Assembly (NCBI RefSeq): GCF_044704955.1
Contig: NC_091984.1
Coordinates: 144,832,001-144,896,000, forward strand
Reading direction: 5' to 3'
From: Pristiophorus japonicus
Taxonomy: Eukaryota
Length of the DNA stretch: 64,000 nucleotides
Position 1 is the first letter of the stretch. Each line of letters starts with the position of its first letter. The notes under the pieces are model-generated. The model worked only from the letters and a program-made list of their open reading frames with translations. It searched no databases and was not told where the DNA came from. Positions 1 to 47,385 of this stretch are shown here, in pieces. A program made the translations under genes and the position numbers.

Positions 1-2060
1 TGCTTTTATACTCTATCCCCCTTGCAATTAAGGCCAACATTTCATTTGCCTTCCTGATTATTGCTGTAACCGCATACTAACTTTTTGTGTTTCATGCACA
101 AGGTCCCCTTTGCAATTTTTCTCCATTTGAAAATTAATTTGCTTTCCTCTTCATTCTGCCAAAGCGGAAAACCTCACATTTTCCCACATTACACTCCATC
201 TGCCAAATTTGTGCCCATTCACTTAGCTGGTCTCTATCCCTTTGCAGACTATTTGTGTCCTCCTCACAATTTGCTTTCCCACCCATCTTTGTCTTATAGG
301 GTGATTATTTTTCATTCTACTCTGATACTTAGAAATTGGCTGAAGACATACAATCGCCCTTCCTGGCTGTATCTATTGTAGGTTTGTGGTCGTTGGTTCT
401 GTGACCAGTTGATCTTCTTTTGGCCATTTTCTGCAGTGTTGTTCCCTCCATGTACGTTCTGTACTACATGTCCTTCTGTCCATTCATCTGTTTGTTCTTT
501 CGACCTGTGTCCATCTGTACACGTGTCCTTCTATTTTTTCTGTGTGCTTCTTCTTCCGTCTGTTCCTGTCCTTCTTCCGTATTCTGCAGAGCTGCTTCTA
601 GCTCGCATATTTATATCCAGGTTATGACTGATCTCCCGCCACTGCGGTTTCTGATAAAGTGTTTGCATCGATATATTGTTTTGTGGTCTACTCGGTTGAT
701 TGACTGCAATAATGGACTCATCCGTTTTCCCATTTGCACACTGAGTCTGCAAGGCTCAAGTTGATTTCTCATCTTCACACCTCATCACAAAAGATGTGCA
801 CCTAGTGTGGTTCCTTTGTTGTCTGGTCTTTTTACAGACTTGATGTCTCCAGTGAGCTTGTTTTCCCCACCCTGGTCAATCAAGTTCAGGGCCTCATGTA
901 ACAACTCCATTCTTGTTATGCATGGAGTCAGTTTTGTTCCCTGACCAAGAATGCCCTTAATTGTCCAGCTTAATTCCAAAAGTTTGTATTAATCTTTAGT
1001 TCATGGTCTCCTTCTGTGCTTTTCTGAAGATTAGTAACCTTACACTCCCTCCTTTAATGTTTCGCTAATATAAAACTAGAGACATTACTTGTGGAGTTAT
1101 TTTTCCATGAGCTCTATTTGGGTGTATTGCAGTCTCAGTCAAAAACTTCAGATTACATTCCTGTTTTACATCAAAAAACAGTACTTTTTCCTGACAAACC
1201 AACACTTGTACAACAAAAATGTTCGGCCTTGATCTGACTTCAGTTTTATATACAAACACTTTGGCTTTGGTTCATCTAAACAACCCTTCAACATTCCCTT
1301 CCTTTGTATTCTGTTTTAACTTACAGGATAAGATAAATAGTTACACCAAAGAACCAACGATACACTGGCTAGTGCATGAGACACGATTAGAACCCAGGAG
1401 AGAATCTGAATATTGAATCCCAAATCCCATTTTGGAGCGGCCATTATTTCCTCAATTTCCTCCCTTACTTTTTCATTTGTTTGGTGTAATGTGTAATAGT
1501 CTTTGTTGGATAGCTCAATGTCCTTCTTTGTATCATCAGCAAATTTGACGACATTACACTCGGTCCCTTCATCTAAGTCATTAATGTAGATTGTAAATAA
1601 TTGAGGCCCCAGCACCGATCCCTGCGGCACCCCATTAGTTACCGTTTGCCAATGTAAAAGTGAACCATTTATCCTGACTCTCTGTTTTTTGTTAGTTAGC
1701 CAATCTTCTATCCATGCTAATATATTACCCCCAACCCCATGAACTTTTATCTTGTGCTTTTGATGTGGCACCTTATCGAATGCCTTCTGGAAATCCAAAT
1801 ACACCACATCTACTGGTTCCCCTTTATCCACCCTGCTCGTTACATCCTCAAAGAATTCCAGCAAATTTGTCAAACATGATTTCCCTTTCATAAAACCGTG
1901 CTGACTCTGCTTGATTGAACATATATGCTTTTCCAAATGTCCTGCTACTGCTTCCTTAATAATGGACTCCAGCATTTCCCAAACACAGATGTTAGGCTAA
2001 CTGGTCTATAGATTCCTGCTTTCTGTCTGCCTCATTTTTTAAATAGGGGCGTGGCATTTG
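1..2060 (-). mobile_element. CR1-clade LINE ORF2 (RT) fragment, split by an insertion at ~290-1525
   Basis: ORF 1316..1975 has CR1 RT motifs [51 protein letters not shown]1 sequence resumes at 1-289. Confidence 0.9.
290..1525 (-). mobile_element. ERV-like 3' fragment: env-like C-terminus, PPT and ~755-bp LTR
   Basis: On the minus strand, purine tract AAAGGAGGGAG is directly followed by TGTAAGG (~1045). The segment ends ...ATAAGACA at 290 and has a TATAAA box at ~611-616. The upstream frame gives a helical segment plus a hydrophobic TM-like stretch ([22 protein letters not shown]). TCTTTGT is repeated at both edges. Confidence 0.55.
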
Positions 2061-2129
2061 CTGTGCATGCTTTGGAGAGGGCGTTAAAAGTAGCGGTGAC
2101 ATCCAGAATACAAGATTTTGCCTCAATTC

Positions 2130-2545
2130 AACGACAACAACTTGTATTTATATAGCGCCTCTAACGTAGTGAAACGTCCCAAGGCACTTCCCAGGAGTAT
2201 TATGAGATACAAAATTTGATACCGAGTCACATAAGAAGAAATTAGTGTAGGTGACCAAAGAGGTATGTTGTAAGGAGCGTCTTGAAGGTGGAAAGAGAGG
2301 TCGAGAGATGGAGAGGTTTAGGGAGGGATTCCAGAGCTTGGGGTCTCGGCAACAGAAGGCACGGCCACCAATGGTTGAGCGATTATACTCAGGGATGCTC
2401 AGGAGGGCTGAATTGGAGGAGCGCAGACATCTCGGGGGGTTGTGGGGCTGGAGGAGATTCCAGAGATAGGGAGGGGCGAGGCCATGGAGGGATTTGAAAA
2501 CAAGGATGATAATTTTTAAAAAGAGGCGTTGGTTAATAGGCAGCC
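2130..2545 (-). mobile_element. L2-clade LINE 3' fragment
   Basis: LPINQRLFLKIIILVFKSLHGLAPPYL...RSTIGGRAF matches the L2 ORF2 C-terminus, followed by the GGCGCTATATAAAT(ACAAG)TTGTTG-type tail. Confidence 0.8.
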
Positions 2546-2759
2546 GATATCGGTCTCTACTTCCCCACCCGCCTCCTCTCACCGAGCCATTCTCACCGCC
2601 CCCCACCTCCAGCCGCTCCCCTGCCTTCCTCCCTCACTTCCGCCCTCCTCACACCACATCTCTCACCCTCCCTCCCCCCATCCCAACTCACCCCTCACTC
2701 CCTCCCAAACTCCCTACCTCACATGCCCCTCCCCCCTCCCATCCCCTCTGCCCCTCCCG

Positions 2760-4010
2760 AATCGGAGTAGACCATTCAGTCCCTGGAGCCTGCTCCGCCA
2801 TTCAATGAGATCATGGCTGATCATCTACCGCAACTCAACTTTCCTGCACTGTCCCCATATCCCTTGATTCTCTTTGTATCCAAAAAATCTATCGATCTCC
2901 ATCTTGAATATACTCAAAGACCGAGCCTCCACAGCCCTCTGGGGTAGAGAATTACAGAGATTCAACACCCTCTGAGTGAAGAGGTTTCTCCTCATCTCAG
3001 ACCTAAATAGCCGACCTCTTATTCTGAGACTGTGACACCTGGTTATAGACTCCCCAGCCAGAGGAAACATCCTCCCTGCATCTACACTGTCAAGCCCTGT
3101 CAGAATCTTATATGTTTCAATGAGATCCCCTCTCATTCTTCTAAACTCTGGAGAGTATAGGCCTTGGAACTGCGAAACCAAGGCGGATAGATGGAGTTCA
3201 GATGCAGATGAGCCGTGATCTGATTGAATGGGGAACAGGCTCGAGGGGCTGAATGGCCTCCTCCTGTTCATTGTGTCCAGCAGCAGCTGTGTACCTCTCC
3301 GCAACCTCATCTTGACTTTTATCAGTCGCATCAGAGCCTTGATTCCCTCACCAGGGGGCTGGTGTTTCCAGTTCAATGTCCAGCTGATCGATGCCATGAG
3401 TCAGACTCAATGAGTGCTGTCAGCGGGTGGAAAGGCTGCTCTAACTGCAGCCTTGTTCTAATGCATTTGGGGAGGGGCAACAAGGCAAGGAATACACAAT
3501 AAATGGAAGGGTACTGAGAGGGTTGGAGGAACGGAGGGACCTTGGAGTGCATGTCCACAGATCCCTGAAGGTAGCAGGCCAGGTCGATAAGGTGCTTAAA
3601 AAGTCATTCGCAATACTTGCCTTTATTAGCCGAGGCATAGAATAGAAGAGCAGGGAGGTTATGCTTGAACTGTATAAAACACTAGTTAGGCCACAGCTAG
3701 AGTACTGCGTGCAGTTCTGGTCACCACATTACAGGAAAGATGTGATTACACGAGAGAGGGTACAGAGGAGATTCACGAGGATGTTGCCGGGACTGGAGAA
3801 TTTTAGCTATGAGGAAAGATTGGATCTGCTGGGGGTGTTTTCTCACTACATTTAAAAAGTACTTGGATGTGCACTTGAAGTGCTATAACCCACAGGGCTA
3901 TGGACCCAGGGCAGGAAAGTGGGATTAGGCTGGGTCGCTCTTCGTTGGCCGGCGCGGACATGATGGGCCGAAATGGCCTCCTTCCGTGCTGTAATTTTCT
4001 GTGATTCTAT
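2760..4010. mobile_element. CR1 3'-end fragments in both orientations (minus 2760-3165; plus ~3457-4010)
   Basis: RRMRGDLIETYKIL...RRNLFTQRV motif (minus); [19 protein letters not shown] (plus); CR1 3' UTR ending in a short ATTCTRTG-like repeat. Confidence 0.85.
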
Positions 4011-4117
4011 AATCGTGCTGGTGGTGTTGACCACTTTAAAAGTCACAGCATACATTTTATTGAAGCTATTTCCGTCCCCGGTTTCCCCGCTGCCAATAAT
4101 TGGATCAATCGATGCTG

Positions 4118-4134
4118 TAGCGCCCCCTTGTGGT
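4118..4134 (-). promoter_or_regulatory. Candidate CTCF binding site (copies at 38059-38075 and 58971-58987)
   Basis: Minus strand ACCACAAGGGGGCGCTA closely matches the CTCF core CCASYAGRKGGCRS, in a non-TE-looking island between repeats. Confidence 0.55.
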
Positions 4135-4309
4135 ATATCTATATGGGCTCCACCCAAACCCCTGCTTTCAACCCTTGAACCCACATTGCCCACGCTAGCT
4201 GGAGCCCTGCTTCTTAATCACAGCATCTCCCAGCACAGAGGGAGGCCATTCAGCCCATCAAACCCATGCTGGCGCTTTGAAAGAGCTATGGACTACAATG
4301 GCCTGGACT

Positions 4310-4447
4310 AACGATCCAGAGACACGAGTTCAAATCCCACCACGGCAGCTGGGGAATTTAATTCAGTTAATTAAATAAATCTGGAATAAAAAGCTAGTGT
4401 CAGTAATGGTGACCACAAAACTGCCAGATTGTCGTAAAAACCCATCT
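4310..4447 (+). mobile_element. tRNA-derived SINE fragment (copies at ~38250-38388 and ~59160-59300)
   Basis: B-box-like GAGTTCAAATCCC followed by a SINE-like body, fused to a CR1 fragment at the same junction in all three copies. Confidence 0.6.
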
Positions 4448-7400
4448 ACCTGGCCTGCTACCTTCAGGGATCTGTGGACATGCATACCAAGGTCCCTTTG
4501 TTCCTCAAAAATCCTCAGTGTCCTACAATTTAATATGTATTCCCTTGCCTTGTTATCCTTCCCCAAAAGCATTACCTCAGACTTCTCTGGATTAAATCCC
4601 ATTTGCCACTGTTCTGCCCACCTGACAATTTCATTGTTATCTTCTAGCAGTCTCCAGCTTTCTTCTTCATTATCAACAACACAGCCGATTTTAGAACCGT
4701 CTGCAAACTTCTTAATCATACCCCCTACATTCAAGTCTAAATCATTGATATATACCACAAAAAGCAAGGGACCTAGTACTGAGCCCTGCAGAACCCCACT
4801 GGAAACAGCCCTCCAGTCACAAAAACACCCAACAACCATTACCCTTTGCTTCCTGCCTCTGAGCCAACTTTGGATCCAACTTACCACTTTTCCCTGGATC
4901 CCATGGACTTTTACTTTCGTGACCAGTCTGCCATGTGAGACCTTATCAAATGTCTTGCTAAAATCCATATACAGTACATCAAACGTGCTGACGTCAGAGA
5001 TCCTCCTTATTTCTTCCTCCATTAATTCAATTAAATTAGCCAGACATGATCTTCCCTCAACAAATTCATGCTGACTGTCCTTGATTAACCCGTCTATCTA
5101 AATGAAGATTTATCCTGTCTCTCAGGACTTTTTCTAACAATTTTCCCACCACCGGGGTTAGGCTGACTGGCCTGCAATGTACGTAGTTAATGTAACACCA
5201 CTTTTTAAAAAGGGAGGGAGAGATGAAAATGTGTAATTATAGACCAGTTAGACTGACAGCAGTAGTGGGGAAAATGTTGGAATAATTTATTAAGGATGAA
5301 ATAACAGCGCATTTGGAAAGCAGTGACAGGATCGGTCCAAGTCAGCATGGATTTGTGAAAGGGAAATCATGCTTGACAAATCTTCTGGAATATTTTTAGG
5401 ATGTAACTATTAGAGTGGACAAGGGAGAACCAGTGGATGTGGTGTATTTGGACTTTCAAAAGGCTTTTGACAAGGTCCCACACAAGAGATTGTTGTGCAA
5501 AATCAAAGCACATGGTATTGGCGGTAATGTACTGACGTGAATAGAGAACTGGTTGGCAGACAGGAAGCATAGAGTCGGGATAAATGGGTCCTTTTCAGAA
5601 TGGCAGACAGTGACTAGTGGAGTGCCGTAAGGCTCAGTGCTGGCACACCAGCTCTTTACAATATACATTAATGATTTAGATGAAGGAATTGAGTGTAATA
5701 TCTCCAAGTTTGTTGATGATACTAAACTGGGTAGTGGTGTGAGCTGTGAGGAGGGCGCTCAGAGGCAGCAGGGTGATTTGGATAGGTTCGGTGAGTGGGC
5801 AAATGCATGGCAGATGCAGTATAATGTGGATAAATGTGAGGTTATCCAATTTGGGGGCAAAAACACAAAGGCAGAATATTATCTCAATGGTGACAGATGA
5901 GGAAAAGGGGAGTTGCAACGAGACCTGGCTGTCATGGTTCATCAGTCATTGAAAGTTGGCATGTAGGTACAGCAGGCGGTGAAGAAAGCCATTGGTATGT
6001 TGGCCTTCATAGCTAGGGGATTTGAGTATAGGAGCAGGGAGGTCTTACTGCAGTTGTACAGGCCTCAGCTGGAATATTGTGTTCAGTTTTGGTCTCCTAA
6101 TCTGAGGAAGGATGTCCTTTCTATTGAGGGAGTGCAGCAAAGGTTCACCAGACTGATTCCCGGGATGGCTGGACTGCCATATGAGGAGAAACTGGATCAA
6201 CTGGGTCTTTATACACTGGAGTTTAGAAGGATGAGATGGGATCTCATAGAAACATATAAGATTCTGACGGGACTGGACAAGTTAGATGCGGGAAGAATGT
6301 TCCCGATGTTGGGAAGTCTAGAAGCAGGGGACATAGTCTGAGGATAAGAGGTGAGCCATTTTGCACTGAGATGAGGAGAAACTTCTTCACTCAGAGATTT
6401 GTTAACCTGTGGAATTCCCTGCCGCAGGGAGTTGTTGATGTCAGTTCATGGATATGTTCAAGAGGGAGTTAGATTTGGTCCTTACGGCTAAAGGGATCAA
6501 GGGGTATGGAGAGAAAGCAGGAAAGGGGTACTGAGGGAATGATTCGTTATAATCTAATTGAATGGTGGTGCAGGCTCGAAGGGCCGAATGGCCTGCTCCT
6601 GCACATATTTTCTGTGTTTCTATTTTTCTTTGTAATTAATCGGTCTATCCCTTTCTCCCTTTTAAAAAAAAGGTGCAACATTAGCTATCCTCCAGTCCTC
6701 TGGCACCACACCTGTATCCCGAGAATTGGAAAATGATGGTCAGAGCCTCTGGTATTTCATTTTTGCTTCTCTTAATAGCCTGGGATACATTTCATCCAGG
6801 CCTGGGGATTTATCCACTTTCAAATCTCGGAAACCCCTTAATACTTCCTCTCTCACAATCTTAATTTCATCTAATATTTCACACTTCTCTTTCCTGATTG
6901 CAATATCTGCATCGACCCTCTCTTTTGTGAAAACAGACGCAAAGTATTCATTAAGAACCATACCGACATCTTACATCTCCACACACAGATTACCTTTATG
7001 GTCTTTAATAGGCACTACTCTTTCTGTAATTATCCTCTTGCTCTTAATGTATTTATAAAACATCTTTGGGTTTTCCTTGATTTTACTTGCCAAGATGTTT
7101 TCATGCTCTCTCTTTGCTTTCCTAATTTCCTTTTTAATTGCAGCCCTGCACTTTCTATACTCCTCAAAAGTTCCTGCAGTATTGAGCCCTCGGTGTCTGT
7201 AATAAGCCTCCCTTTTTTACTTTATCCTACACTGTATTTCTATTGACATTCAGGACCTCAAGATTTGTTAGCCCCACCCTTTTTCTTTAAGGGAACAGAC
7301 TTACTCTGAAACCACAGGATTTCCTCCTTGAATGCCTCCCACTGCTCTGACACTGATTTACCTTCAAGTAGCCGTTTCCAGTCCACTTTGGCTAAATCTC

Positions 7401-11894: not shown

Positions 11895-11987
11895 TTCGTG
11901 TAGCTTACCCAGCAATGCCTGTAGGTGTGGTGTGTGTGTGTGTCTGACTGTTACCCAGCACCGCCTGTCGGTGTGTGTGTGTGACAG
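11895..11987 (+). repeat. (GT)n-GACTGTTACCCAGCACCGCCTGTAG minisatellite, left half (right half 18511-18592)
   Basis: The same unit occurs on both sides of the 11988-18513 array, so the array interrupts it. Confidence 0.85.
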
Positions 11988-12325
11988 TTTTTTTTTTTGT
12001 TTTTGTTTTTGTTTTTGTATTCGTTGCCAATCTTTCCAATTCTTTGTCAAATCACAAACGCCAGAGGTCACCTTGCACACATCAAGGATCACTCTGCGCC
12101 AATGCTCTTAGCCAAAAGGCCTATAGCCACTGCACCGTTCCTGGAAGTACTGCAATACCAGGTTCGTGCCATGGAGGTGGATGGGTCAAACCACCCCACC
12201 CACCTCTTATTTCCAAAAAGCATAGGAGAACCACCTTCCTGATCCAGGGAGAACCACGTTGGGGTCATGGTTACTCCCCTGTCAGGTCAGCTACGCATGA
12301 TCTTAGCCAAAAGGCCGAGAAGCGA
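11988..12325 (-). mobile_element. U2/U1 snRNA-derived chimeric SINE, copy 1 (full length)
   Basis: Minus strand in order: TCGCTTCTCGGCCTTTTGGCTAAGATCA (U2 5'); CTGACCTGACAGGGGAGTAACCATGA..GTGGTTCTCCC (U1 5'/SL I); TTTTTGG..CCTGGTATTGCAGTACTTCCAGGAACGGTGCA (U2 3'); GGCCTTTTGGCTAAGA; unique tail; (CAAAAA)n/poly(A). Confidence 0.88.
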
Positions 12326-12756
12326 CAGTTTTTTTTAAATTTCAAAATATACTTTATTCATAAAAGGAATCTGTACAGTACATTCAATGGCATTTCATTA
12401 CATTTCGCTGCGGTCAGCAATCCCATACAATACATCTGGGTGCTGACAGCAGTTGCGTTCGTTACATTTCTCGTTTTTCTGTTCAACTGCGATTCAGTAC
12501 AATAAACAGGGTACATTGTGGTACATTTACTCAAATTACATTTCATGTGTTACAATACAGAGCCCGAAATGGGTGACGGTACATTTACATTTTGTCTTAT
12601 CAAACATGCATTTCATAACACACCTTGCATTGTACATGGCACGACATTGGTGTTTACAGATTTGGTGCTCTATGTACACAAAGTGTAAATTACAAATACC
12701 GCCCGAGGGAGGTTTGTACTGATTTCTGCCCCCGGGTTTTCCGTGGCAGAAGGGCT

Positions 12757-15700
12757 TTAGACTGTGGCCCTACCCCACCGTGCCTTTGCGGCGACTGCAT
12801 CAATTTTCAGTGCGTCCCTCAGCACATATTCCTGGATCTTGGATTGCGCCAGTCTGCAACATGCGGACGTGGTCATCTCCTTGTTCTGGAAGACCAGCAA
12901 GTTTCGGCAAGACCAAAGAGCGTCTTTGACCGAGTTGATGGCCCTCCAGCAGCAGGTGATGTCTGTCTCGGTGTGTGTCCCTGGGAACAGCCCGTAGAGC
13001 ACAGAGTCCTGTGTTACGGAGCTGCTTGGGATGAACCTCGACAGCAACCACTGCATCTCTTTCCAGACCTGCGTTGCAAAGGCGCAATCCTGAAGGAGAT
13101 GGGCGACAGTCTCGTCCGCCCCGCAGCCGGCCCGGGGGCACCGTGCCATGCTGCTGAGGCGTCGGCTGTGCATGAACACTCTGACGGGTAGGGCCCCCCT
13201 CACCGCCAACCAAGCTACGTCTTGGTGCTTGTGTGTGAGCTTTGGCGATGAGACGTTCTGGCAAACAAGTTCGACAGTCCGCTCAGGGAACCACCTGACA
13301 GGGTCCACCGTCTCCTTCTTTCGGAGGGCGTCCAGGACCTTACGTGCTGACCACTGTTTGATGGCCTTGTGGTCAAAGGGGTTTCTTTTGAAGAACTTTT
13401 CCACGAAGGACAGGTGGACAGGCATGGTCCAACTGGTGGGGGCGTTTCGCGGCAGCGTGGCCAGACCCATCCTTCTCAACAATGGGGACAGGTAGAACCT
13501 CAGCACGTAGTGACACTTGGTGTTTGCGTACTGGGGGGCTGTGCATAGCTTGATGCAGCCGCACACAAAGGTGGCCATCAGGATGAGGGCCACGTTCGGA
13601 ACGTCCTTTCCTCCACTGTCCAGAGATTTGTACATCGTGTCTCAGCGGACACGGTCCATTTTGGATCTCCAGACAAAGTGGAAGACGGCTCGGGTGACTG
13701 CCGCGGCGCTGCAGCGTGAGATGGGCCAGACCTGCGCCACGTACAACAACACCGAGAGCACCTCGCTCTTGATGACCAGGTTCTTGCCTGTGATGGAAAG
13801 GGAGCGCTGCTCCCAAAATGACAGTTTCTGTCTGACCTTGGCAATGCGCTCGTCCCAGTTTTTGGCGCACGCCCCGTCCGCTCCGAATCATATTCCCAGC
13901 ACCTTCAGGAAATCTGGCTTGACGGTGAAGGGAATGGAGGCTCGGTCGGTCCAGTGACCAAAGAGCATGGCCTCGCTTTTGGTGCGGTTGACCTTTGCTC
14001 CCGAGGCCAGTTCAAACTGGTCGCAGATTGCGAGCAATCTGCGGACCGACTGCGGGTCCGAGCAAAAGACGGCGACGTCGTCCATGTACAGCGAGGTTTT
14101 GACCTGGGCGCCTCCGCTGCCTGGGATCGTCACCCCTCTGATGCCCGCATCCTTCCTGATGGACTCGGCAAAGGGCTCGATACAACACACAAACAAGACA
14201 GACGAGAGAGGACAGCCTTGCCTGACTCCAGATCTGATTGGAAAGCTTTGAGTTTCCCACCCGTTGATTAGAACTGCACTACTGATGTCTGTGTCGAGCA
14301 GTTTGACCCAATTTCGGATGCCCTCCCCGAACCCCATTTTGGAGAGCACGTCCATCAGGTACGTGTGCGATATCCTGTCAAAGGCTTTCTCCTGGTCTAA
14401 GCTGATTAAACAGGTGTTCACCCTCCTGTCCCGCATGTAGGCGATCGTATCTCTGAGTAGCGCGAGGCTATCAGAGATCTTCCTGCCGGGGACAGCGCAG
14501 GTCTGGTCCTGGTGAATCACCAGCTCAAGGGCAGACTTGACCCTGTTGGCGATGACCTTCGACAGGATCTTGTAGTCCACATTGAGCAGCGAAATGGGCC
14601 GCCAGTTTTTGATTTCCTCCCTCTCCCCCTTTCCTCATCGATTCTGACATGCTGCCGGCCAGAAGCATACCTCCGTACACTTCCAGCAGGTCTGGGCCTA
14701 TCCAGTCCCACAGAGCCGAGTACAACTCGACCGGTAAGCCATCGCTTCCGGGAGTTTTATTCGTCTCGAAGGACCGGACGGCCTTTGTCAGCTCGTCCAG
14801 AGTTAGCGGGTGGTCCAGACTCTCTCGCTTGCCGTCGTCTAAGACCTCCGAAATAGATGACAGGAAAGACTGGGAGGCCGCACGGTCTGTGGGCTTGACG
14901 TCGTACAGCCTGGCATAGAAGGATTTGCTGATCCTCTGCATGGCAGGCTGCGAAGACGTCACAGAACCGTCTTCTTCCTTTAGGCTGGTGATCACAGAGC
15001 TCCCCCTGTGTACCTTTTGGAAGAAGAAACGCGAACACGTCTCATCCTGCTCGACGGAGCGGACTCTGGATCGGAAGATGATCTTGGAGGACTCCGAGGC
15101 AAAGAGCGAGGCTTGCTGGCCCTTCACCTCTTCGAGTTCCTCCACAACATCGACCCCCATCGACTGCAGCAGGAGCAGGTTTTGCATATTTGTCTGGAGT
15201 CGGGACAATTCCCTCTGTCTCCCTCTCGCCTCCTGAACACCTTTGAGGATGAAGAACCTCTTGATGTTCGTCTTGATTGTTTCCCACCAGTGAATCGGGG
15301 AATCGCAGAGGGGTTTTACGGTTCTCCAACCGTTGTAATCCCTCTTGAGTTCCTCAATGTTTTCCGGAGTCAACAGTTTCACGTTCAGCTTCCATATCCC
15401 TCTGCCAACTTTCTGGTTGTCCTGTGGGTGACAGTCAGCCAGTAGGAGGCAGTGGTCAGAGAAGAACACCGGCGTGATGTCGGTGGATCTGACCTTGAGC
15501 GTGTGGGACACAAACAGGAAGTCAATTCTGGAACGGACGGACCCGTCTGGTCTCGACCAGGTGTATCTGCGCGGTGCTCCGTCTGCAGGGTTGCTGAAGA
15601 CGTCGCACAGCTTGGCATCTTTTACCGTATCCATCAGGAGTTTGGACGTGGCGTCCAGTTTGCTGTCGGCTCTGCTGGATCGTCCAGCCGCATCGATGAT

Positions 15701-16135
15701 GCAGTTGAAGTCACCACCCAGAATGACCGGCCTGGACGTTGCCAGTAACAGTGGGAGCTGCTGGAAGAGGGCCAGCCTCTCGTTCTTCACAGCTGGAGCG
15801 TAAACATTAATTAACCTGAGAGGGGAGTTTTTGTACATTACATCTGCTACGAGGAGGCGGCCGCCCACCACCTCCTTAACTTCGGTGATGGTGAAGTGGC
15901 CTCCCCGCAGCAGAATGCCCAAGCCGGAAGCTCGGCTGTCGTTGCCCCCTGACCAAATGGATGGTCCATGGGTCCACCATCGTGACCACTGCCGGTAACT
16001 GCTGAAGTGCGGCAGGCCGCACTCCTGCAAGAACAGCAGGTCCGCTTTGACCTTGGCGAGGTACCCCAAGGTGGAAACACATCGCGTAGTCGATTTCACG
16101 CTACGCACGTTAATACTAGCAATTTTTAAATCCAT
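12757..16135 (-). pseudogene. Tx1 ORF2 (APE endonuclease - RT - C-terminal zinc finger), disrupted
   Basis: ASINVRS, FLQEC, GGDFNC, SRIDF, FSDH (APE); LDQEKAFD, GVRQGCPLS, YMDD (RT); CPRAGC..ETVAHLLQDC. Frameshifting deletion at ~14625 and TGA stops at 13888-13890 and 13642-13644. Confidence 0.92.
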
Positions 16136-16155
16136 TTTTAAGCTATGTTTTACAT

Positions 16156-17644
16156 TTACATACATTGCAGTTCAGATACATCGTTTTCAATTTCAGATAA
16201 ATTGTTGTCAATTTCCCCATATTCCACAATGGCGATTTCCAGCATGTGTAAGTTATTACTATCCACATCAAGTTGAACATTTACTGCCCCTGGGGTGGCG
16301 TGGTCATCATCGTCCTCTGTTGTGGGGATGTTTTGACCAGGGGACTGCTGCAGTTCTGTGATTAAGTCCTCAATGTTCTCTGCACTGTCCTCGCCTGGTG
16401 TTGGTGGTTCCCCCTTTTCCTCAGTCGCGGCGGTGTCGAGCTGGTGTGCGTCGATCGCTGCGTCGCTCCCGGTGTTCCGGAGGTGGGGTGTGCTGGGCAC
16501 TTCGCTGCTCTCGTTATCCCGGGCTGGTCTGCGTTGGTTGCTCCTTCGCTGGGTCCTTCGTTGCTCTCAGGTTCCTGGGGCAGGGCTGTGTTGGTCGCTT
16601 CCCTGCTCCTGGTTTTCTGTGGCCGTGGGATGGCGCATTGCCTCTTCTTCAGGCGGTGGCACTTTTCCTCATCAGACAAGCTGCCGTCGCTGGTTTCTGC
16701 CGAGCTTGGTGGTCGCCTCTTGGCCTTGCGCCTTTTCCTTACTGTCTGCCATTCTGCTTCCTCGTCTGATGTCAGCTCATCTCTGGGTTCGGTGCTCTGG
16801 GGTCCTCGCCGTCTTGTCCCGAGTTCATGGTTGGGGGGAGGGTGTGGCTCTCCTCTGGAGCGTTGTGTCCGTCAGCTTCCTCCTCCTCTGGTGCAAAGTT
16901 CTTTGCTGCCTGCGCATAGCTGCGATTGCGTTTGGGGCAGTTTTTGTAAAGGTGCCCAGCCAGACCACAGAGGTTGCAGCACTTGGTCTCCTTGCAGTCT
17001 TTTGACTGGTGGCCCTCGTTCTTGCAGTTTCGGCAGATGACAGTCTTGCAGCTTGCCGCCACATGGCCTGCCTTCCCGCAGGTGCGGCACACGTTGGGTT
17101 GGCCAGCGTACACCATGTAGCCCCGGCTTCCTCCGATGGAAAAGCTGGAGGGGGGGTGCAGGATGGTTCCGCTGGCGTCCACCTTCAAGGTGACCTGGAT
17201 CTGGCGCTTGCTAGTCCATATTCCGTGCCCGTCTTTCACGTCACTGCTGCTTCCTGCCCCATCGAAAAACCTGTTGAGGAAAGTCAGCACATCGATGACG
17301 GGGATGTGGGGGTCGAACATTTGCACTGTGATAGTGCGTCTTCTCTGCGACGGGAGGGTGAACAGCGGCTCCCAAGTTAGCACTGAGCGCACCGGTTCAC
17401 TCGCCTCCTTCAAACCCTTCAGGAACTTCAGGCAGAGGGTGACGGTTCTGAAGGTCACATCGAAGTAACCTCTCTTCGGGAGGTCCTGCAAGGCGAAGAC
17501 GTCGGCGACTTTCATGCCACATGTTCCCAGCAGGATTTTCTTCACGAAAAGTTCCCGGTTGATCATTGTCTGTCCTTCCACTTTCTTTACCGTCACTCGG
17601 ATGGTGTTTCGGACTCCCTGGTTCGCCGCTCGGTTGGCCGCCAT
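16156..17644 (-). pseudogene. Tx1 ORF1 (ZCCHC3-like N-terminus, three CCHC knuckles, acidic low-complexity tail), frameshifted
   Basis: MAANRAANQGVRNTIRV..YFDVTF; CRTCGKAGHVAASC, CRNCKNEGHQSKDC, CNLCGLAGHLYKNC. The natural frame continues DELTSDEEAEWQTVRKRRK after a frameshift near 16800. Confidence 0.85.
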
Positions 17645-17896
17645 CCGGGTTGCAGATTCCTCCTTTCGCTGTGAGTTTTGGCCAAAGCCTTCAACCTGGC
17701 GTTGCCCCAGTCCGGGGCACGGGCGGACCTCCAGGCCCACCCCTTGACAGGCCCAAAGGCCCGTCGAATCGTCAGTCGACATGCAGATTTTGTCTCCTCT
17801 CTCCAATTGGCGCCTGGCTCAAGCCAAAGGCCAGAGCCAGCAAAACTGGAAAAACGAGTTTCTGCAGTCAGTCGATTTGCATATGAATGCCCAATC

Positions 17897-17939
17897 AACA
17901 GGTACTACACTTGATCTTAGCCAAAAGGCCGAGAAGCGA
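17897..17939 (-). ncRNA. U2 snRNA 5' fragment (nt ~2-44) forming the head of the Tx1 element; not a complete gene
   Basis: TCGCTTCTCGGCCTTTTGGCTAAGATCAAGTGTAGTACCTGTT differs at one position from vertebrate U2 as recalled, and includes the GTAGTA branch-point recognition sequence. Confidence 0.9.
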
Positions 17940-17942
17940 CAG

Positions 17943-18240
17943 TTTTTAAAAAAAAATTATTTATTCGTTGCCAATCTTTCCAATTCTTTGTCAAATCACA
18001 AACGCCAGAGCTCACCCTGCACCTGTCAAGGATCACTCTGCGCCAATGCTCTTAGCCAAAAGGCCTAGAGCCACTGCACTGTTCCTGGAAGGACTGCAAT
18101 ACCAGGTTCGTGCCATGGAGGTGGATGGGTCAAGCCACCCCACCCACCTCCTATTTCCAAAAAAGCAAGCATATACCTTCCTGATCCAGGGAGAACCACT
18201 TTGGGGTCATGGTTACTCCCCTGTCAGGTCAGTTACGCAT
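17943..18240 (-). mobile_element. U2/U1 chimeric SINE, copy 2 (lacks first ~27 nt)
   Basis: Colinear with copy 1 from ATGCGTAACTGACCTGAC to the A-rich tail. Confidence 0.88.
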
Positions 18241-18513
18241 TTTTTTTTTTTTTAATTTTTTTTTTTGAAATTCGTAGCCAATCGTTCCAATTCTTTGTCA
18301 AATCACAAACGCCAGAGGTCACCTTGCACACGCCAAGGATCACTCTGCGCCAATGCTCCTAGCCAAAAGGCCTAGAGCCACTGCACCGTTCCTGGAAGTA
18401 CTGCAATACCAGGTTCGTGCCATGGAGGTGGATGGGTCAGGTCCCCCACACACCTCCGTGGAGATGGATGGGTCAAGCCACCCCACCAGGTCAGTTACGC
18501 ATGATCTTAGCCA
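18241..18513 (-). mobile_element. U2/U1 chimeric SINE, copy 3 (U1 part largely deleted, internal duplication)
   Basis: Starts TGGCTAAGATCATGCGTAACTGACCTGG and jumps to the U2 3' half; GGAG(G/A)TGGATGGGTCA duplicated; long poly(A). Confidence 0.85.
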
Positions 18514-18759
18514 GCACCGCCTGTAGTTGTGTGTGTGTGTGTGTGTGACTGTTACCCAGCACCGCCTGTAGGTGTGTGTGTGTGACTGTTACAGTACTGT
18601 CATGGCGGCCTGAGGAGAGTGCCGCGATGATGCTCCAGCTCCTGTGGGGGTCGGGGGTCGTTAGGGGATTGGAGTGAGGGGGGGGTGGGAGACCAGGGGG
18701 GTGATCGGGGGCTGACCTTGTGTGGAACGGTGGGGACCAGGGTGGTCGGGGGGGTTCTC

Positions 18760-19212
18760 AGAGTGTCTCACCAATACCCTGTACAGATGTAGCTAGACTT
18801 CCCTGCTTTTATACTCCATCCCCCTTGCAATAATGGCCAACATTCTATTGACCTGCCTGATCACTTGCTGTACCTGCATACTAACTTTTTGTGTTTCATG
18901 CACAAGGACACCCAGGTCCCTCTGTACTGCAGCAGTTTCCAATTTTTCTCTATTTTAAAAAAAATTTGCTTTTCTATTCTTTCTGCCAAAGTGGATAACC
19001 TCACATTTTCCCACATTATACTCCATCTGCCAACGTTTTTCCCACTCACTTCGCCTGTCTATATCCCTTTGTACATTTTCTCCTCCTCACAATTTGCTTT
19101 CCCATCCTTCGTCATAGGCAGTCCATGGGATTCGAGGAAGACTTGCTTCCACTCTTAAAATCAGTCCTTAGGTGGCTACAGTCCAATACGAGAACCATAG
19201 TCCCTGCCACGT
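18760..19212 (-). mobile_element. CR1 RT fragment followed by an RTE-type 3' end
   Basis: CR1 sequence 18760-19105. GGCAGTCCATGGGATTCGAGGAAGACTTGCTTCCAC resembles the RTE 3' end at ~28507-28540. Confidence 0.65.
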
Positions 19213-19589
19213 GGGGAACTAGAGATGATTCTGCAAACCTGACTGGAGGTTTGGTACAAACAGGTTTTACAAACCGATCAATTGAGTTTCACAGAAATTG
19301 TCAAAAAATTTGCTCTTTTCAGAACCAACATCGCCCACTTTTGGTATGAAGACAGCACTGCCAATTTCCCTCACAATTTGACTGAGCTGCAATTTTCAAT
19401 GTCTCCTTACGTGGCTCGCTGTCAATCTTTATTCTATAACGCTCCTGTGAAGCGCTCGGGGAGTATTACTGTGTTAAAGGTGCTGTATAAAAGTTGCTAT
19501 TGTTGTTTGTTCTGAGTTAGCTGTTCCAACTGAGGTCGGGATATGACTCACAGCTCAGACTGTGCGGCATCAGTGATGCAATGTTGTAT

Positions 19590-19930
19590 CGTGGGTTGAA
19601 GCCCCACTCCAGGGACCTAAGTGTAAAATAAAGATATACACTACTGTGCAGTCCTGAGGGAGTGCTGCACTGTAAGCGGGGCAGCACTGAGGGAGTGCTG
19701 CACTGTAAGCGGGGCAGCACTGAGGGAGTGCTGCACTGTAAGCGGGGCAGTACTGAGTGAGTACTGCACTGTCAGAGAGGCAGTACTGAGGGAGTGCCAC
19801 ACTGTTGCAGGTGCAGTACTGAGGGTGTGCCGCACTGTTGGAGGGGCAGTACTAGGGGAGTGCTGCACTGTCTGAGGGGGAGGACTGAGGGAGTGCCGCG
19901 CAGTGGGAGAGGTAATGCTGAGGGGGTGCT
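19590..19930 (+). repeat. SINE head followed by a ~33-bp minisatellite amplified from the SINE body
   Basis: About 8-9 units of GCAGTACTGAGGGAGTGCTGCACTGT..., matching 10005-10040 of the Deu-SINE. Confidence 0.8.
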
Positions 19931-21179: not shown

Positions 21180-24168
21180 GCACCACGACAGATGCGAGAC
21201 TGGTGGAAGAACTTCCTTCTGACTTCGGAAACATCTTCTCCTCCAGCCACTGAGGAGATTCTGCCGACTCCCCTCCCCCCCTCAACAGCAGCAGGCCTTG
21301 AGATCCCCTGCTGCAAGACGTCTTGGTCCCATTACTCGGGGAGTTAAATGGGGTGTTACTACAAGGGGGTGTCAAGGTGCAGGAGGGAAGCATGGCCGCA
21401 GGTAGGGAGGGGGAGGGGTGGTGCAATATAGTCCTTAGTTCTTGTTAAAAATACATTTTTTGTTGAATGTTTACAGTTGGGGATGGTGTGAGGGTGTTGT
21501 TATGTTATTGTTGCGTTACAAATGTTGACGCTTCGGGGTTGAGGTGGTAGGGTTATATATGTTTGTACAAAACATTTTCACATTCTTCTTTAATTATTAA
21601 ACACTTTAATTTAACTTTACAATTGTCCTGAAGTGTCTTCTTATAACATAAGGTAACACATCAGTACAATGGTTGGGAACAATGGCCAGGCCAGCCCAGG
21701 CCAGGCAAGGATGAAACGTAACACAACTGTAACTGTCACCAATATAAGTTCATGCAAAATGTTCATTTATTAGCTGCTGACGCAAGAGGTTTGCAGCTGT
21801 GTAACTTCCACGGGGCTTTTCCAGTGTTGTGGGGGGCGGCGTGGGGGCATGGGTTAATCGCCAGGCTGATTGTCCTCCCCGAGGTCGTCGTCCTCCTCCT
21901 CGTCCTTCTCTTCAGCCTCTCCTCTCTCCTGAGGTGGACCGGCGGTCACATCTGGCAATTGTTGGCCTCCTCTTATAGCTAGGTTATGCAACATGCAGCA
22001 CACCACAATAAACTCAGTGACCTGCTCAGGGTGGTATTGTAGGCTGCCACCTGAATGGTCCAGGCATCTGAAGCATTGCTTAAGCACCCCAATTGTCTTT
22101 TCGATGATATTGCGTGATTACCTGTCGCAATATGGCTTTCATTGAAGCGCTTCTCGGCTTCTCTCTGGGGATTACGCAAGGGGCTCATGAGCCAGCTGGC
22201 AAGGCCATATCCTTTATCCCCCAGCATCCAACCGTGATCTTGTGGCTGACTCTTAAACAGGTCAGAGACAGTGTTCTCACACAAGAAATGCACATCATAT
22301 ATGCTCCCTGGAAAATTAGCATTTACTGCCAGAATTATTTGTTTGTGGTGGACAACGAGCTGCACATTCAGGGAGTGGAATCCCTTTCGGTTTTAAACAG
22401 CTCTTCATTCTGTAAAGTTGCTCTCAGGGCGATGTGCGTACAGTCTATTGCTCCCTGCACCTTGGGGAAGTTTGCTATTCTCGAGAACTCCAAAGCCCTC
22501 TCAGTCTGTGCCTCCCTGGTCATAGGGAAGCTTATAAAGTCACCTGTCGAATGCAACAATGTGTGGCATGCTAAGAGATACCGCAAATGTCGCCAGCAGA
22601 GGCCTGAAAGGAGCCCAATGCGTAGAAGGAAAGTGCCGCAGTAACCCTAACCTCAACAGGCAGTGCAGTCCTGATGGTGCTGGTAGGCTGCAGATCTCCC
22701 TTAATTAGCTGGCATATCTCACTGATGACCTCCTTTCAGAAGCACAGCCTCCCAATGCACGTGTAATTGGACAGAGCCAGGTACGATCGCTTATCAGTGT
22801 ATATGCATTGGGTATAACGTCTCCTCCGGTTAGTCTGACATCAGTAGAGGGGAAAATGTTGAAGTCAATTATTAAGGATAAAATAGCAGTGCATTTGAAG
22901 AGCAGTGACAGGATCGGTCCAAGTCAGCATGGATTTGTGAAAGGGAAATCATGCTTGACTAATCTTCTGGAATTTTTTGAGGATGTAACTAGTAGAGTGG
23001 ACAAGGGAGAACCAGTGGATGTGGTGAATTTGGACTTTCAAGAGGCATTTAACTCGTCCCACATAAGAGATTGGTGTGCAAAATCAAAGTGCATGTTATT
23101 GGGGGTAATGTACTGGCATGGATAGAGAATTGGTTGGCAGACAGGAAGCATTGGTTGCCGAGTCGGGATAAACGGGTCCTTTTCGGAATGGGAGGCAGTG
23201 ACTAGTGGAGTGCCACAAATTCACAAATTGATTCTCCTCACAAGTACCTGAAGCAGCCTTTCAGTACAGATCCTCCGAGTCACAAAATGACGTCCGTAGT
23301 GCCGAGTACTGCCGACTAGTGCGACTTTAGGTCAGGCGAGTGCAGCTTTTCTTCAGCGACTTTTTTGGCCAGCAATCATTTCGGCGACGTATGGGCGAAA
23401 TGCCGAAAGTTGCGGTCGGCGATAATCTGAGCGATAATCTGGCGCAAGTTTCCATTTTCAGCCCAATTTTTGGCCTTGCATGCAGATGATGTCATTTTTT
23501 TTTTTAATTAGGCCGGGCGATGCAGCACATTCATGTGTGCCAAAAGTTGGACCAGCAACAAATGGGCGATAATTGGGCGCTAGTTTCAACTTTTTAGCAA
23601 ATATGGGCGATAGCCTGAATCTTTGCGCTTATATGGGCGATTAATGTTCGCTAAATGGGCGATCAATGGGCGACAAATGAGCGATCAATGGTCAATAAAT
23701 TGGCGATCAATGATCGATAAATGGGCAATCAATGGGCGATAAATGGGCGATCAAAGGGATATCAATGGGCGACCAATGGGCGATAAATGAGTGATAACTG
23801 GGTGATAACTGGTCAATCAATGGGCGATAAATGGCCAATAAATGAGCGATAACTAGGCGATAACTGGGCGCTCAATGGGCGATCAATGGGCGATAACTGG
23901 GCAATAAATGGGCGATCAATGGGCGATCAATGGGTGATCAATGGGTGATCAATGGGCGATCAATGGGCGATAACTGGGCAATAAATGGGCAATAACTGGG
24001 CGATCAATGGGCGATAACTGGGCGATCAATGGGCGATCAATGGGTGATCAATGGGCGATAAATGGGCGATCAATGGGTGATCAATGGGCGATAACTGGGC
24101 GATCAATGGGCGATCAATGGGTGATCAATGGGTGATCAATGGGCCATGATGTGCTGAACGTCTAGCCC
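21180..24168 (-). mobile_element. PIF/Harbinger DNA transposon remnant (HARBI1-like transposase), interrupted by CR1 at ~22810-23215
   Basis: GAIDCTHI, FPGSIYD, LGDKGY, VVCCMLHN in shifted frames (21854-22800). Subterminal repeats and a GGGCTAGA terminus at 24161-24168. Confidence 0.8.
23630..24145 (+). repeat. 11-bp minisatellite (AATGGGCGATC / ACTGGGCGATA)
   Basis: More than 40 contiguous tandem units with no spacers. Confidence 0.95.
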
Positions 24169-35264: not shown

Positions 35265-36722
35265 CCCCCACTCCCCTCCCCCCACTGCCACTCCCCCCAC
35301 ACCCCACTTCCCTGCCCCCACTGCCACTCACCCTCCCCCACTGCCACTCCCCCTCCCCCCACTGCCACTCCCCCCACTGCCACCTCCCCCTCCCCTGCCA
35401 CCACTCCCCTCCCCCCACTGCCACTCCCCTCCCCACACTGCCGCTCCCCCACCCCCCACAGCCACTCCCCTCCTCCCACTGCCACTCCCACTCCCCCAAT
35501 GCCGCTGCCCCAACCCCCACAGCCACTCCCCTCCTCCCACTGCCACTCCCCCTCCCCCACTGCCACTCCCATTCCCCCCATTGCCACTCCCCTCCACCCA
35601 CTGCCACTCCCCTCCCCCCACTGCCACTCCCCCTCCCCCCACTGCGACACCCCCTCTCCCCACTGCCACTCCCCACCCCCCACTGCCACTCCCCCACTGC
35701 CAGTCCCCCTCCCCCACTGCCGCTGCCCCAACCCCCACTCCCACTCCCCTCCCCCCACCACCACTCCCCCTCCCCACACTGCCACACACCCTCCCCCCAC
35801 TGCCACTCCTCTCTCCCCACTGCTACTCCCCCTCCCCCCATTGCCAATCCCTCTCCCCCACTGCCACTCCCCCACCCTCCACTGCCACTCCCCTCCCCCA
35901 CTGCCACAACCCCTCCCCCCACTGCCACTCCCGCTACTGCCACTCTCCCTTCCCCACTACCACACCCCTCCCCCACTCCCCCAATGCCACTCCCCCTCCC
36001 CCCATGCCACCCCCCCAACTGCCAACCCCCCTCCCCCTCCCCTCATGCCACTCCCCCTCCCCCCACTGCCACTCCCCCTCCCCCCACTGCCACTCTCCCA
36101 CTGCCACTCCCCCTACCCCCCCTCCCCCACTGCCACTTCCCCTTCCCCCACTGCCCCTCCCACTCCCCCCACTGCCACTCCCCCTCCCCCCACTGCCACT
36201 CACCCACCCCCCACTGCCCCTCCCCGGCCTGCCACTTCCCCTTCCCCCACTCCCCCTCCCTCCATGCCACTCCCGCTCCCCCCACTGCCACTCCCCTCCC
36301 CCCACTGCCACACCCCCTCCCCACACTGCCACTCCCGCTACTGCCACTCCCCCCTTCCCCACTACCACACCCCTCCCCCACTTCCCCCACTCCTCTCCCC
36401 CTCCCCTCATGCCGCTCCCCCTCCCCCCACTGTCGCTCCCCCCACTGCCACTCCCCCTACCCCCACTGCCACTCCCCCCACTGCCACTTCCCCTTCCCCC
36501 ACCGCCCCTCCCCTTTCCCCCACTGCCAATCCCCCTCCCCCCACTGCCAGTCCCCCTCCCCCCACTGCCACTTCCCCTTCCCCCACTCCCCCTCCCTCCA
36601 TGCCACTCCCCCTCTCCCCAATGCCACGCCCTCCTCCCCCACTGCCACTCCCCCCTCCCCCACTGCCACTCCCCCTCCCCCCACTGCCTTTCCCCGCTCC
36701 CCCCACTGCCACTCCACTGCCG
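35265..36722 (+). repeat. C-rich minisatellite (CCCCCACTGCCACTCCCC..), ~21-bp unit; second copy 56555-57632
   Basis: Directly visible; ~1.45 kb versus ~1.08 kb in the duplicate. Confidence 0.95.
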
Positions 36723-45400: not shown

Positions 45401-46198
45401 AGTCCAGCCATCCCTGGAATTAGTCTGGTGAACCTTCGCTGCACTCCCTCAATAGCAAGAACGTCCTTCCTCAGATTAGGAGACCAAACCTGAACTCACT
45501 ATTCCAGGTGAGGCCTCACTAAGGCCTTGTACAACTGCAGTAAGACCCCCCTGCTCCGATACTCACATCCCCTAGCTAAGAAGGCCAACAAACCATTTGC
45601 CTTCTTCCTCCCCTGCTGTACCTGCACGCCGACCTTCAAAGACTGATGAACCATGACACCTAGGTCTCACTGCACCTCCCCTTTTCCTAATCTGCCGCCA
45701 TTCAGATAATATTCTGCCTTCATGTTTTTGCCCCCAAAGTGGATAACCTCACATTTATCCACATTATACTGCATCTGCCATGCATTTGCCCACTCACCCA
45801 ACCTGTCCAAGTCACCCTGCATCCTCTTAGCATCCCCCTCACAGCTCACACCGCCACCCAGTTTAGTGTCATCTGCAAACTTGGAGATATTACACTCAAT
45901 TCCTTCATCCAAATCGTTAATGTATATTGTAAAGAGCTGGAGTCCCAGCACTGAGCCCTGCGGCACTCCACTAGTCACTGTCTGCCATTCTGAAAAGTGC
46001 CCATTTATCCCAACACTCTGCTTCCAACCAGTTCTCTATCCACGTCAGTACATTACCCCCAATACCATGCTTTGATTTTGCATAGCAATCTCTTGTGCGG
46101 GAACTTGTCAAAAAGCCTTTTGAAAGTCCAAATATACCACATCCACTGGTTCTCCCTTGTCCACTCTACAAGTAACATTCTCAAAAAATTCCAGAATT
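42410..46198. mobile_element. Plus-strand CR1 (42790-45345, long RT frame 43609-45066) nested in a minus-strand CR1
   Basis: 485-aa RT frame. The host sequence GAGATCCCC...ATCCTTCTAAACTCC is split by the insert. Confidence 0.9.
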
Positions 46199-46555
46199 TT
46201 TTATTATCAGGATTATATTATCAGGGTTATATTCTCACTGTCTGTCATTGTCACAACACTCGCTATATAAGTGCAAGTTGTTGTTGTGTTCAGGGCCGCT
46301 GTATCTGGCTCAGGCTTCTTATCCATCCCCCCCTTTCCCTTCCCCCTCTATTGGGGGCCGTGCCTTCAGCTGCCTGGGCCCTAACTCCCTGCTCCCTAAA
46401 CCTCTCTGCCACTCCACCCCTCTCCTCTTTTAAGACCTCCCTTCAAACCCAATCTGTGACTGAGGGTTTTGATCACCCTCCCAGCCCCTCCCCCTTTGGC
46501 TCAGCACCACTTTGACCAGATTACGCCTCTTTCAGCTGCCTTGGGATGTTGTTCT

Positions 46556-46557
<2 letters not shown>

Positions 46558-46592
<35 letters not shown>

Positions 46593-46928
46593 TCATGTCC
46601 AATCGTTATCCAATCGTTACAATTCTTTGTCAAACGCCAGAGGTCACCCTGCACCAGTCAAGGATCACTCTGCACCAATGCTCTTAGCCAAAAGGCCTAG
46701 AGCCACTGCAGCGTTCCTGGAAGTACTGCAATACCAGGTTCGTGCCATGGAGGTGGATGGGTCAGGTCCCCCACACACCTCCGTGGAGGTGGATGGGTCA
46801 CCAATCCCACCCACCTCCTGTTTACAAAAATGTAAGCATATACCTTCCTGACCAGGGAGGAACCACCCGGACGTCATGGTGGCTGGTCAGGTTAGTTATG
46901 CAGATCTTAGCCAAAAGGCCGAGAAGCG
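46558..46928 (-). mobile_element. U2/U1 chimeric SINE, copy 4 (divergent variant) with TSD
   Basis: Same modular order, ~30-nt poly(A), flanking direct repeat TGTTCTAAT (46550-46558 / 46929-46937); inserted in an L2-type tail. Confidence 0.9.
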
Positions 46929-47385
46929 TGTTCTAATGTTCCAGTTTCTATAGCATTGTCGGTTGTACCTGGCAACAGAACGTCTCTGTGTGGATATACC
47001 CCATGCACCGAGCTCCACGGTGAGGCCTCCCACATTGGAATGGCCAGCCGATGCTCGCTGCAGTGCGGAGTAGCTGCTGAACTGCCAATCAGTCTGAGAC
47101 ACCGCCTCACGAGCGGACGAGGAGATACACGCTGAGATCCACCATCAAATGACACGTGGGGAACTGGAAATGATTCTGCAAATCTGACTGGAGGTTTGGT
47201 CCAAACGGGTTTTACAAACCAATCAATTGAGTGACACAGAAATTGTCAAAAAATGTGGTCTTTTCAGAACCAACATCGCCCCCTTTTGGTATTAAGACAG
47301 CACTGTCAATTTCCCTCACAATTTGACTGAGCTGCAATTTTCAATGTCTCCTCACGTGGCTCGTTGTCAATCTTTATTTTATAAC

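Follow-up and report, generated by a model that had tools for sequence, protein, structure and literature searches.

Almost every SINE has a pol III gene at its start, be it that of a tRNA, 7SL RNA, or 5S RNA. Alu, which comes from 7SL RNA, has an internal pol III promoter; U2 snRNA genes have an external pol II promoter. The closest described systems to the element presented here are the SINEU families of crocodilians. These families, with 1,000 to 7,700 copies each, carry poly(A) and have no tail in common with a LINE (PMC4494074). SINEU-1G contains a partial duplication of U1 at a TGG, and SINEU-3 has been described as forming “tandem insertions sandwiching a TSD” (PMC4494074). Some of the crocodilian Tx1-Mar partners have U1 or U2 heads of their own, and Tx1-11_Crp has a U2 head in common with SINEU-1 subfamilies (PMC4494074). 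How do pieces of spliceosomal RNA come to lie at the front of a retroposon? Kojima, who found no SINEU outside the crocodilians, proposed both capture of the target flank and template jumping (PMC4494074). In the case of Utopia insertions, the downstream U2 begins at nt 39, and the 3' flank of Keno is stated to be identical (PMC4640811).

The window analyzed here, a stretch of 64 kb, contains four copies (c1 to c4) of a short element that looks like the elasmobranch counterpart of crocodilian SINEU. The points of likeness are 6-fold. (i) It is a short (<500 bp) poly(A) retroposon whose 5' part comes from U1 and U2 pieces. (ii) The mosaic seemingly grew as snRNA pieces were added again and again at the 5' end and were in part duplicated, and the duplication junction in the shark element reads TGG. 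(iii) It has internal T runs and no evident pol III promoter. (iv) Like SINEU-1, it has no LINE with a matching 3' tail. (v) Three of its copies lie in an array whose pattern is that of tandem insertions sandwiching a TSD, as in SINEU-3. (vi) It is associated with an L1-superfamily LINE, which here, in one array, has the same U2 head. The two systems differ in their hosts, the present one being an elasmobranch, in module order (U2-U1-U1'-U2(3')-U2'-tail in the shark), and in the target, which in the shark is not a Mariner element. A looser parallel can be drawn between monomeric Alu (FAM/FLAM) and SINEU-3, in that a small structured RNA has had an internal segment removed or replaced while its terminal protein-binding hairpins have been kept.

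As judged from its sequence, the element fits the definition of SINEU in every feature tested, with the multicopy criterion and the Tx1 partnership only partly shown. As it has no evident pol III promoter, the term SINE applies to it in Kojima's structural sense only. We consider it probable that this is a SINEU-class, noncoding poly(A) retroposon mobilized in trans by a U2-headed Tx1/Keno-like LINE.

Anatomy of the U1/U2 mosaic

All four copies lie on the minus strand of the window, and a reader of the plus strand therefore meets their poly(T) first. The preliminary description had placed them to within 1 to 3 nt of the boundaries in Table 1, which come from reading of the sequence and from blastn. 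Only c1 and c4 are full length; both are noncoding and start at U2 nt 2 to 4. The mosaic that the copies share begins with the U2 5' end, continues with the U1 5' end plus stem-loop I and a second U1 loop piece, and then passes to a U2 3' module (Sm site to 3' end), which is followed by a second U2 5' piece, a unique tail of ~80 nt, and poly(A). A tracts are present at the 3' end of four of the four copies. This order of modules had been proposed beforehand, and the Rfam U2 and U1 alignments and the alignment of the copies bear it out, the second U2 5' fragment included.

How good are the matches to the snRNAs? The Rfam gathering scores are 46 bits for U2 and 69.5 bits for U1. At curated thresholds, a scan of the whole window returned two hits, both of them to U2, namely c1 at 63.5 bits and positions 17766-17940 at 53.1 bits. 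The U2 model aligned with c1 from end to end (positions 1-192), with high posterior probability for U2 nt 1-36, the Sm site, and stem-loops III and IV as far as the mature 3' end; a U1-like block occupies the place of U2 stem-loop II. The score of c4 was 45.8 bits, with the same layout as c1. Positions 1-48 of the U1 model matched c2 at 22.1 bits (E 0.003 in a 1.1-kb search with all families) and the same block of c1 at 15.9 bits, the better of these being significant for the search but far under the gathering score, and Rfam did not detect U1 in the divergent c4. Of the two snRNA matches on which the preliminary description relied, the one to U2 is above its threshold on c1; the one to U1 is weaker and stays below.

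Several details of the modules deserve mention. Beyond nt 29, the U2 head of c1 continues through nt 30-36 with 2 mismatches, a stretch that is ambiguous with the start of U1. Of the second U1 fragment, c1 contains more than c2 and c4 do. The U2 3' module, corresponding to model positions ~94-192, is the best conserved region among the copies. A 35-nt duplication of U2 stem-loop III is common to c3 and c4. Rfam matches to “Prion_pknot” and several miRNAs, at 18420-18471 in c3 and 46745-46796 in c4, were rejected as artefacts of this duplicated, GC-rich stem-loop.

The tail had been called unique and ~90 nt long. The first holds, as it matches neither the adjacent LINE nor any Rfam family; the length is 76 nt. 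With respect to structure, the tail does no better than shuffled sequences (z = -0.24) and gives no covariation signal. In a hairpin predicted at 12026-12126 on the minus strand, the variable positions lie mostly in loops or leave the pairing intact (U-A to U-G), which may be a faint hint of constraint among four sequences.

Rfam scans of the element copies with the tRNA, 5S, and SRP (7SL) models gave no match at an E of ≤10, in keeping with the earlier view that no such head is present. A classical SINE, with a tRNA, 7SL, or 5S head and an internal pol III promoter, was rejected for want of any such match. In c1, moreover, T runs (T4, T5, and T4) occur at element positions 15, 108, and 210. 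The T4-T5 runs and the lack of a tRNA, 5S, or 7SL head make pol III transcription unlikely. Two other readings of c4 were also dropped: a V-gene/leader context, suggested by an octamer-like motif, had no ORF in support, and an snRNA-type PSE seen by eye upstream proved to be a half match only, at -95, which is the wrong distance.

Table 1. Features of the element copies, the intervening LINE, and their target sites
Feature	Position	Strand	Remarks
c1	11988..12326	-	Full-length copy, 339 nt; A-rich tail 12017-11988; 5' end at U2 nt 2-4
c1, U2 head	12291..12326	-	U2 nt 1-29 exact except nt 1 (Rfam U2 alignment, LINE-head alignment)
c1, U1 module	12247..12293	-	U1 model positions 1-48, 5' end and stem-loop I (Rfam U1)
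c1, second partial U1 stem-loop I fragment	12225..12246	-	GGATCAGGAAGG...; assigned by eye against the Rfam consensus
c1, U2 3' module	12125..12224	-	Sm site ~12220-12213, stem-loops III and IV, to mature U2 3' end
c1, second U2 5' fragment	12094..12124	-	~U2 nt 7-36, diverged
c1, unique tail	12018..12093	-	76 nt; 91-95% conserved among copies
CTGTC, 3' copy of c1	11983..11987	-	Followed by (AC)n of the ~36-bp GT-rich repeat
CTGTC, LINE/c1 junction	12328-12324	-	
LINE	12329..17940	-	5.6 kb, near full length, L1 superfamily
LINE 3' end	12336-12329	-	Poly(A), preceded by an AATAAA signal
LINE ORF2	12757..16165	-	Exo_endo_phos, RVT_1, zf-RVT (Pfam); APE-RT-zf-RVT
LINE ORF1	16772..17806	-	Two ZCCHC3-type RNA-binding domains and CCHC zinc knuckles (Pfam)
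LINE head	17940-17897	-	U2 nt 2-44, one mismatch
CTGTC, c2/LINE junction	17942-17938	-	
c2	17943..18239	-	5' truncated precisely after the U2 head; poly(A), then CTGTC, then LINE
c3	18240..18513	-	5' truncated inside the head at U2 nt ~18-21, TGG microhomology with flank; U1 and Sm-site modules deleted; stem-loop III duplicated; poly(A) abuts c2 without a TSD
c4	46558..46928	-	Dispersed full-length copy of another subfamily, 371 nt; divergent U1 module, stem-loop III duplication, 7-nt tail deletion, 11-nt tail insertion
c4 TSD	46550..46557	+	TGTTCTAA(T), 8-9 bp, repeated at 46929-46937

The CTGTC array and its U2-headed LINE

The first three copies form an array together with a LINE. On the minus strand it reads as follows: GT-rich repeat, c3-poly(A), c2-poly(A)-CTGTC, LINE-poly(A)-CTGTC, and c1-poly(A)-CTGTC-(AC)n repeat. 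The same five nucleotides are thus found at three consecutive junctions (c2/LINE, LINE/c1, and c1/flank), which implies that a single kind of machinery has used one site several times over. A short tandem repeat with units of ~36 bp, CCTACAGGCGGTGCTGGGTAACAGTC(AC)n on the minus strand, surrounds the array and occupies 11900-11987 and 18514-18600; where the insertion site of the array has CTGTC, the neighboring repeat units read CAGTC. With its flank, CTGTC agrees with U2 nt 38-45 at 7 of 9 positions on the primed strand (p estimated at ~0.01 at best). Given so modest a p value and the CAGTC of the neighboring units, the resemblance is a hint only.

The junction between c3 and c2 is of another kind. 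There is no duplication between these copies, and TGG microhomology is present where c3 meets the flank, for which the simplest reading is one event, in which the reverse transcriptase left a first SINE RNA and jumped onto the poly(A) of a second. The c3-c2 junction would then show on a small scale how an element might gain modules.

What is the LINE that sits between c2 and c1? Its ORF1 shows no L1-type Transposase_22 domain in Pfam. Its ORF2 aligns from end to end, in two frames, with a 1127-aa Pleurodeles protein at 45-48% identity, and its lesions amount to a single frameshift (near 14630) and two in-frame stops (at 13890 and 13644). It is a full-length copy that died recently. The nearest solved structure to its reverse transcriptase is human L1 ORF2p (E 4e-35), with R2 at an E of 7e-13, a result that places the LINE in the L1 superfamily only. 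The best matches to its proteins come from the whale shark (60-81% identity), Mustelus (72%, a short match), and Mobula (62%), and only after these elasmobranchs do frogs and salamanders follow, at 40-45%; the matches indicate an elasmobranch host. No labeled Tx1 reference was among the matches in the protein searches, nor did cluster names or the Atlas give a Tx1 label, and we infer the description “Tx1/Keno-like” from the architecture, the U2 head, and the site-specific behavior of the LINE.

The likeness to Keno and Tx1-Mar lies in an APE-RT ORF2 with a C-terminal zinc-binding domain, a CCHC-type ORF1, and head-to-tail insertion at one short site, and that to Keno in particular lies in a 5' U2 fragment that ends 6 nt past the published nt 38/39 site. 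Unlike Keno, the LINE copy is flanked by SINE copies and is not in a U2 gene, its target being CTGTC next to (AC)n in the GT-rich repeat.

How might the SINE and the LINE be related? A blastn search of the window with c1 found, beyond the four copies, a fifth match of 36 nt that covers the U2 head only and lies at 17940-17905, that is, at the 5' end of the LINE. There, 34 of the first 36 nt of the LINE and c1 are identical. The U2 head is all that the SINE and the LINE have in common, with no similarity between their 3' tails. We propose that an RNA of ~340-370 nt, made up of U2 and U1 pieces and the unique tail, would enter the genome through target-primed reverse transcription, for which an L1-superfamily LINE would supply endonuclease and reverse transcriptase. 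As partner, the U2-headed Tx1/Keno-like LINE of the same array is the likeliest, and the array itself was probably built by repeated insertion at one CTGTC site.

A family that is real but is mobilized by some other poly(A)-dependent LINE, from a different Tx1 or L1 family, is the one competing account to which we give an appreciable, if minor, chance. The adjoining U2-headed LINE would then merely use the same hot spot. That SINE and LINE have no common 3' tail speaks in its favor, as does the target of c4 (TTAGAACA), which is unlike CTGTC. It has more trouble with the near identity of the two U2 heads and with a 5-bp duplication that is the same at three consecutive junctions, with SINE and LINE interleaved in one array. 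We keep to the U2-headed LINE as the probable partner, a pairing that rests on one array in one window.

Separate insertions of one family

Are the four copies members of a family, or are they the products of duplication at a single locus? Against c1, blastn gave 93% identity over 282 nt for c2, 92% over 218 nt for c3, and 74% over 379 nt, gaps included, for c4. An nhmmer search with a profile of the four copies, built without positions 12129-12164, found no further copies in the 64 kb. The identity to c1 is unevenly distributed along the element. From stem-loop III to the tail it is 95% in c2, 95% in c3, and 91% in c4; in the 5' part it is 88% in c2 and 79% in c4. From this contrast, the differences in c4 look like a different U1 module and not like uniform decay. 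The five module junctions and the 76-nt unique tail are common to all copies, and the junctions are thus found in four copies at two loci and in at least two structural subfamilies. The 5' ends of c1, c2, and c3 are all different. The 5-bp TSD of c1, CTGTC, is unlike that of c4, and c4 lies 28 kb from the other copies in unrelated flanking sequence. Its own TSD and different U1 module argue against a single segmental duplication, and we read the copies as separate retroposition events from at least two subfamilies.

It might still be asked whether the array arose by local rearrangement, through unequal crossing-over or segmental duplication of one insertion in what would be a very small family. 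A span of 6.5 kb does hold three of the four copies, and both ends of the array are flanked by the same GT-rich repeat. Set against this are the differences among c1, c2, and c3 in their 5' ends, internal structure, and 5-8% of sites, as well as the separate location of c4, 28 kb away with a TSD of its own, and we think such an origin improbable. That these few copies might all stem from segmental duplication had been named beforehand as one way to refute the family, and the TSD and U1 module of c4 speak against it.

Even less likely, in our judgment, is that each copy is an independent chimeric retropseudogene, made anew by template switching among U1, U2, and another RNA. L1-type enzymes do make snRNA chimeras (PMC4494074), and the c3-c2 junction resembles a template jump. 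The chimeric retrocopies of the U6/L1 type even offer a close likeness, with an snRNA joined to another RNA by template switching, poly(A), and TSDs, as here. Such chimeras, however, are one-off products with variable junctions, whereas the five junctions and the 76-nt tail of the shark element are identical in all copies, and the subfamily-specific indels common to c3 and c4 are not something that independent events would repeat. Junctions that are fixed across copies and subfamilies indicate that the shark unit itself propagates. We can practically discard the idea that these are U2 variants, whether genes or pseudogenes, with a role in splicing. In its favor, the Rfam U2 model aligns with c1 end to end above threshold, and neither the Sm site nor stem-loops III and IV are damaged. 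Against it stand the poly(A) tails and TSDs, the U1-like sequence in place of stem-loop II, the disruption of GUAGUA, which pairs with the branch point, the 200 nt of additional sequence beyond the 3' end of U2, and the truncation of two copies.

The evidence therefore supports an element that, on its sequence features, acts as a retroposon family and not as a set of snRNA genes or one-off chimeras. The proposal that a chondrichthyan genome carries an snRNA-derived SINE is borne out by the shared junctions and tail, the poly(A), and the TSDs, and by the match of the LINE protein to elasmobranchs.

The surroundings of the copies contain a number of other repeats. One of ~236 bp occurs twice in the window, at 47150-47385 and 19205-19440, with 93% identity. 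The two lie 0.2-0.7 kb upstream (in element orientation) of c4 and of the array, in the same relative orientation. A repeat near both SINE loci could reflect a preferred target context, local duplication, or chance. CR1-like LINE fragments, recognized by RVT_1 hits or typical C-terminal RT motifs, are found at 1316-5022, 18767-19110, and 43609-45978, one of them directly upstream of the array and another ~0.6 kb from c4. Integrase and RT fragments of LTR retroelements are located at 47921-48676 (minus strand), 50303-50956 (plus strand), and 51722-52969 (plus strand). Tandem repeats include C-rich 21-bp minisatellites, (CCACTCCCCCTCCCCCCACTG)n, at 35268-36715 (1.4 kb) and 56558-57627 (1.1 kb), as well as an 11-bp satellite, (ATGGGCGATCA)n, of ~46 copies and a 33-bp tandem array (23633-24144; 19648-19930).

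Origin of the snRNA modules and its wider meaning

Where might the U2 heads come from? The LINE may have taken its head from its target, a U2 gene, whose upstream half would have been included in the transcript when the U2 pol II promoter drove a copy lying inside that gene. This head ends at U2 nt 44, which equals the published nt 38/39 site plus a 6-nt duplication, and this favors an upstream target flank cotranscribed from the U2 gene. The head of the SINE may share the origin of the LINE head. It is unambiguously U2 only to nt 29, with no clean end at nt 38, and the case for a cotranscribed target flank is weaker here than for the LINE. The inner modules could be the outcome of template jumps of the reverse transcriptase onto mature snRNAs, as suggested by a U2 3' module that ends at the mature U2 3' end. 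Both target-flank capture and template jumping, the two processes put forward for SINEU, probably contributed.

A further speculation, which we hold to be less likely than not, is that the U2 head is a captured promoter context and not a random product of template switching. In this scenario, active U2 genes would harbor master copies of the LINE and the SINE at their Keno site (nt 38-44), and the external promoter of these genes would direct pol II transcription of the copies, with U2 +1 as the start. Having kept the Sm site together with stem-loops III and IV, the SINE RNA might then follow the snRNP maturation route.

In the open-access literature searched, SINEU families are described only in crocodilians, and we found there no snRNA-derived SINEs in cartilaginous fishes. 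A “SINE_U” class label is present in the automated annotation of another animal, and an unpublished library entry is therefore possible. Exact-pattern scans of metagenome and viral contigs with two SINE-specific motifs found none, which is expected and uninformative. Sampled words were recovered in sequencing runs of one organism at 70-85% in four DNA runs of one sample and at 30-42% in three small runs, and in those of a second organism at only 6%, figures from which no cross-species inference is made.

The SINEU class has so far been published for one reptile order only, and its mode of transcription is an open question from Kojima's work. The lineages of sharks and crocodilians have been separated for more than 400 million years. 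A second occurrence, again with U1 and U2 pieces and again beside an L1-superfamily LINE with the same head, would show that Tx1/Keno-type biology can give rise to this design repeatedly and that the design is no peculiarity of crocodilians. To this the window adds a physical link, namely, SINE and LINE interleaved at one duplicated site, and with a U2-headed L1-superfamily LINE inside the same array, the parallel with crocodilian SINEU is stronger than the preliminary description had made it. The U2 head of the LINE ends next to the published U2 target site, and promoter capture is thereby directly testable in the genomes and RNA data of sharks. If true, it would answer Kojima's question of how SINEU is transcribed and would define a type of SINE that depends on the promoter of its own target gene.
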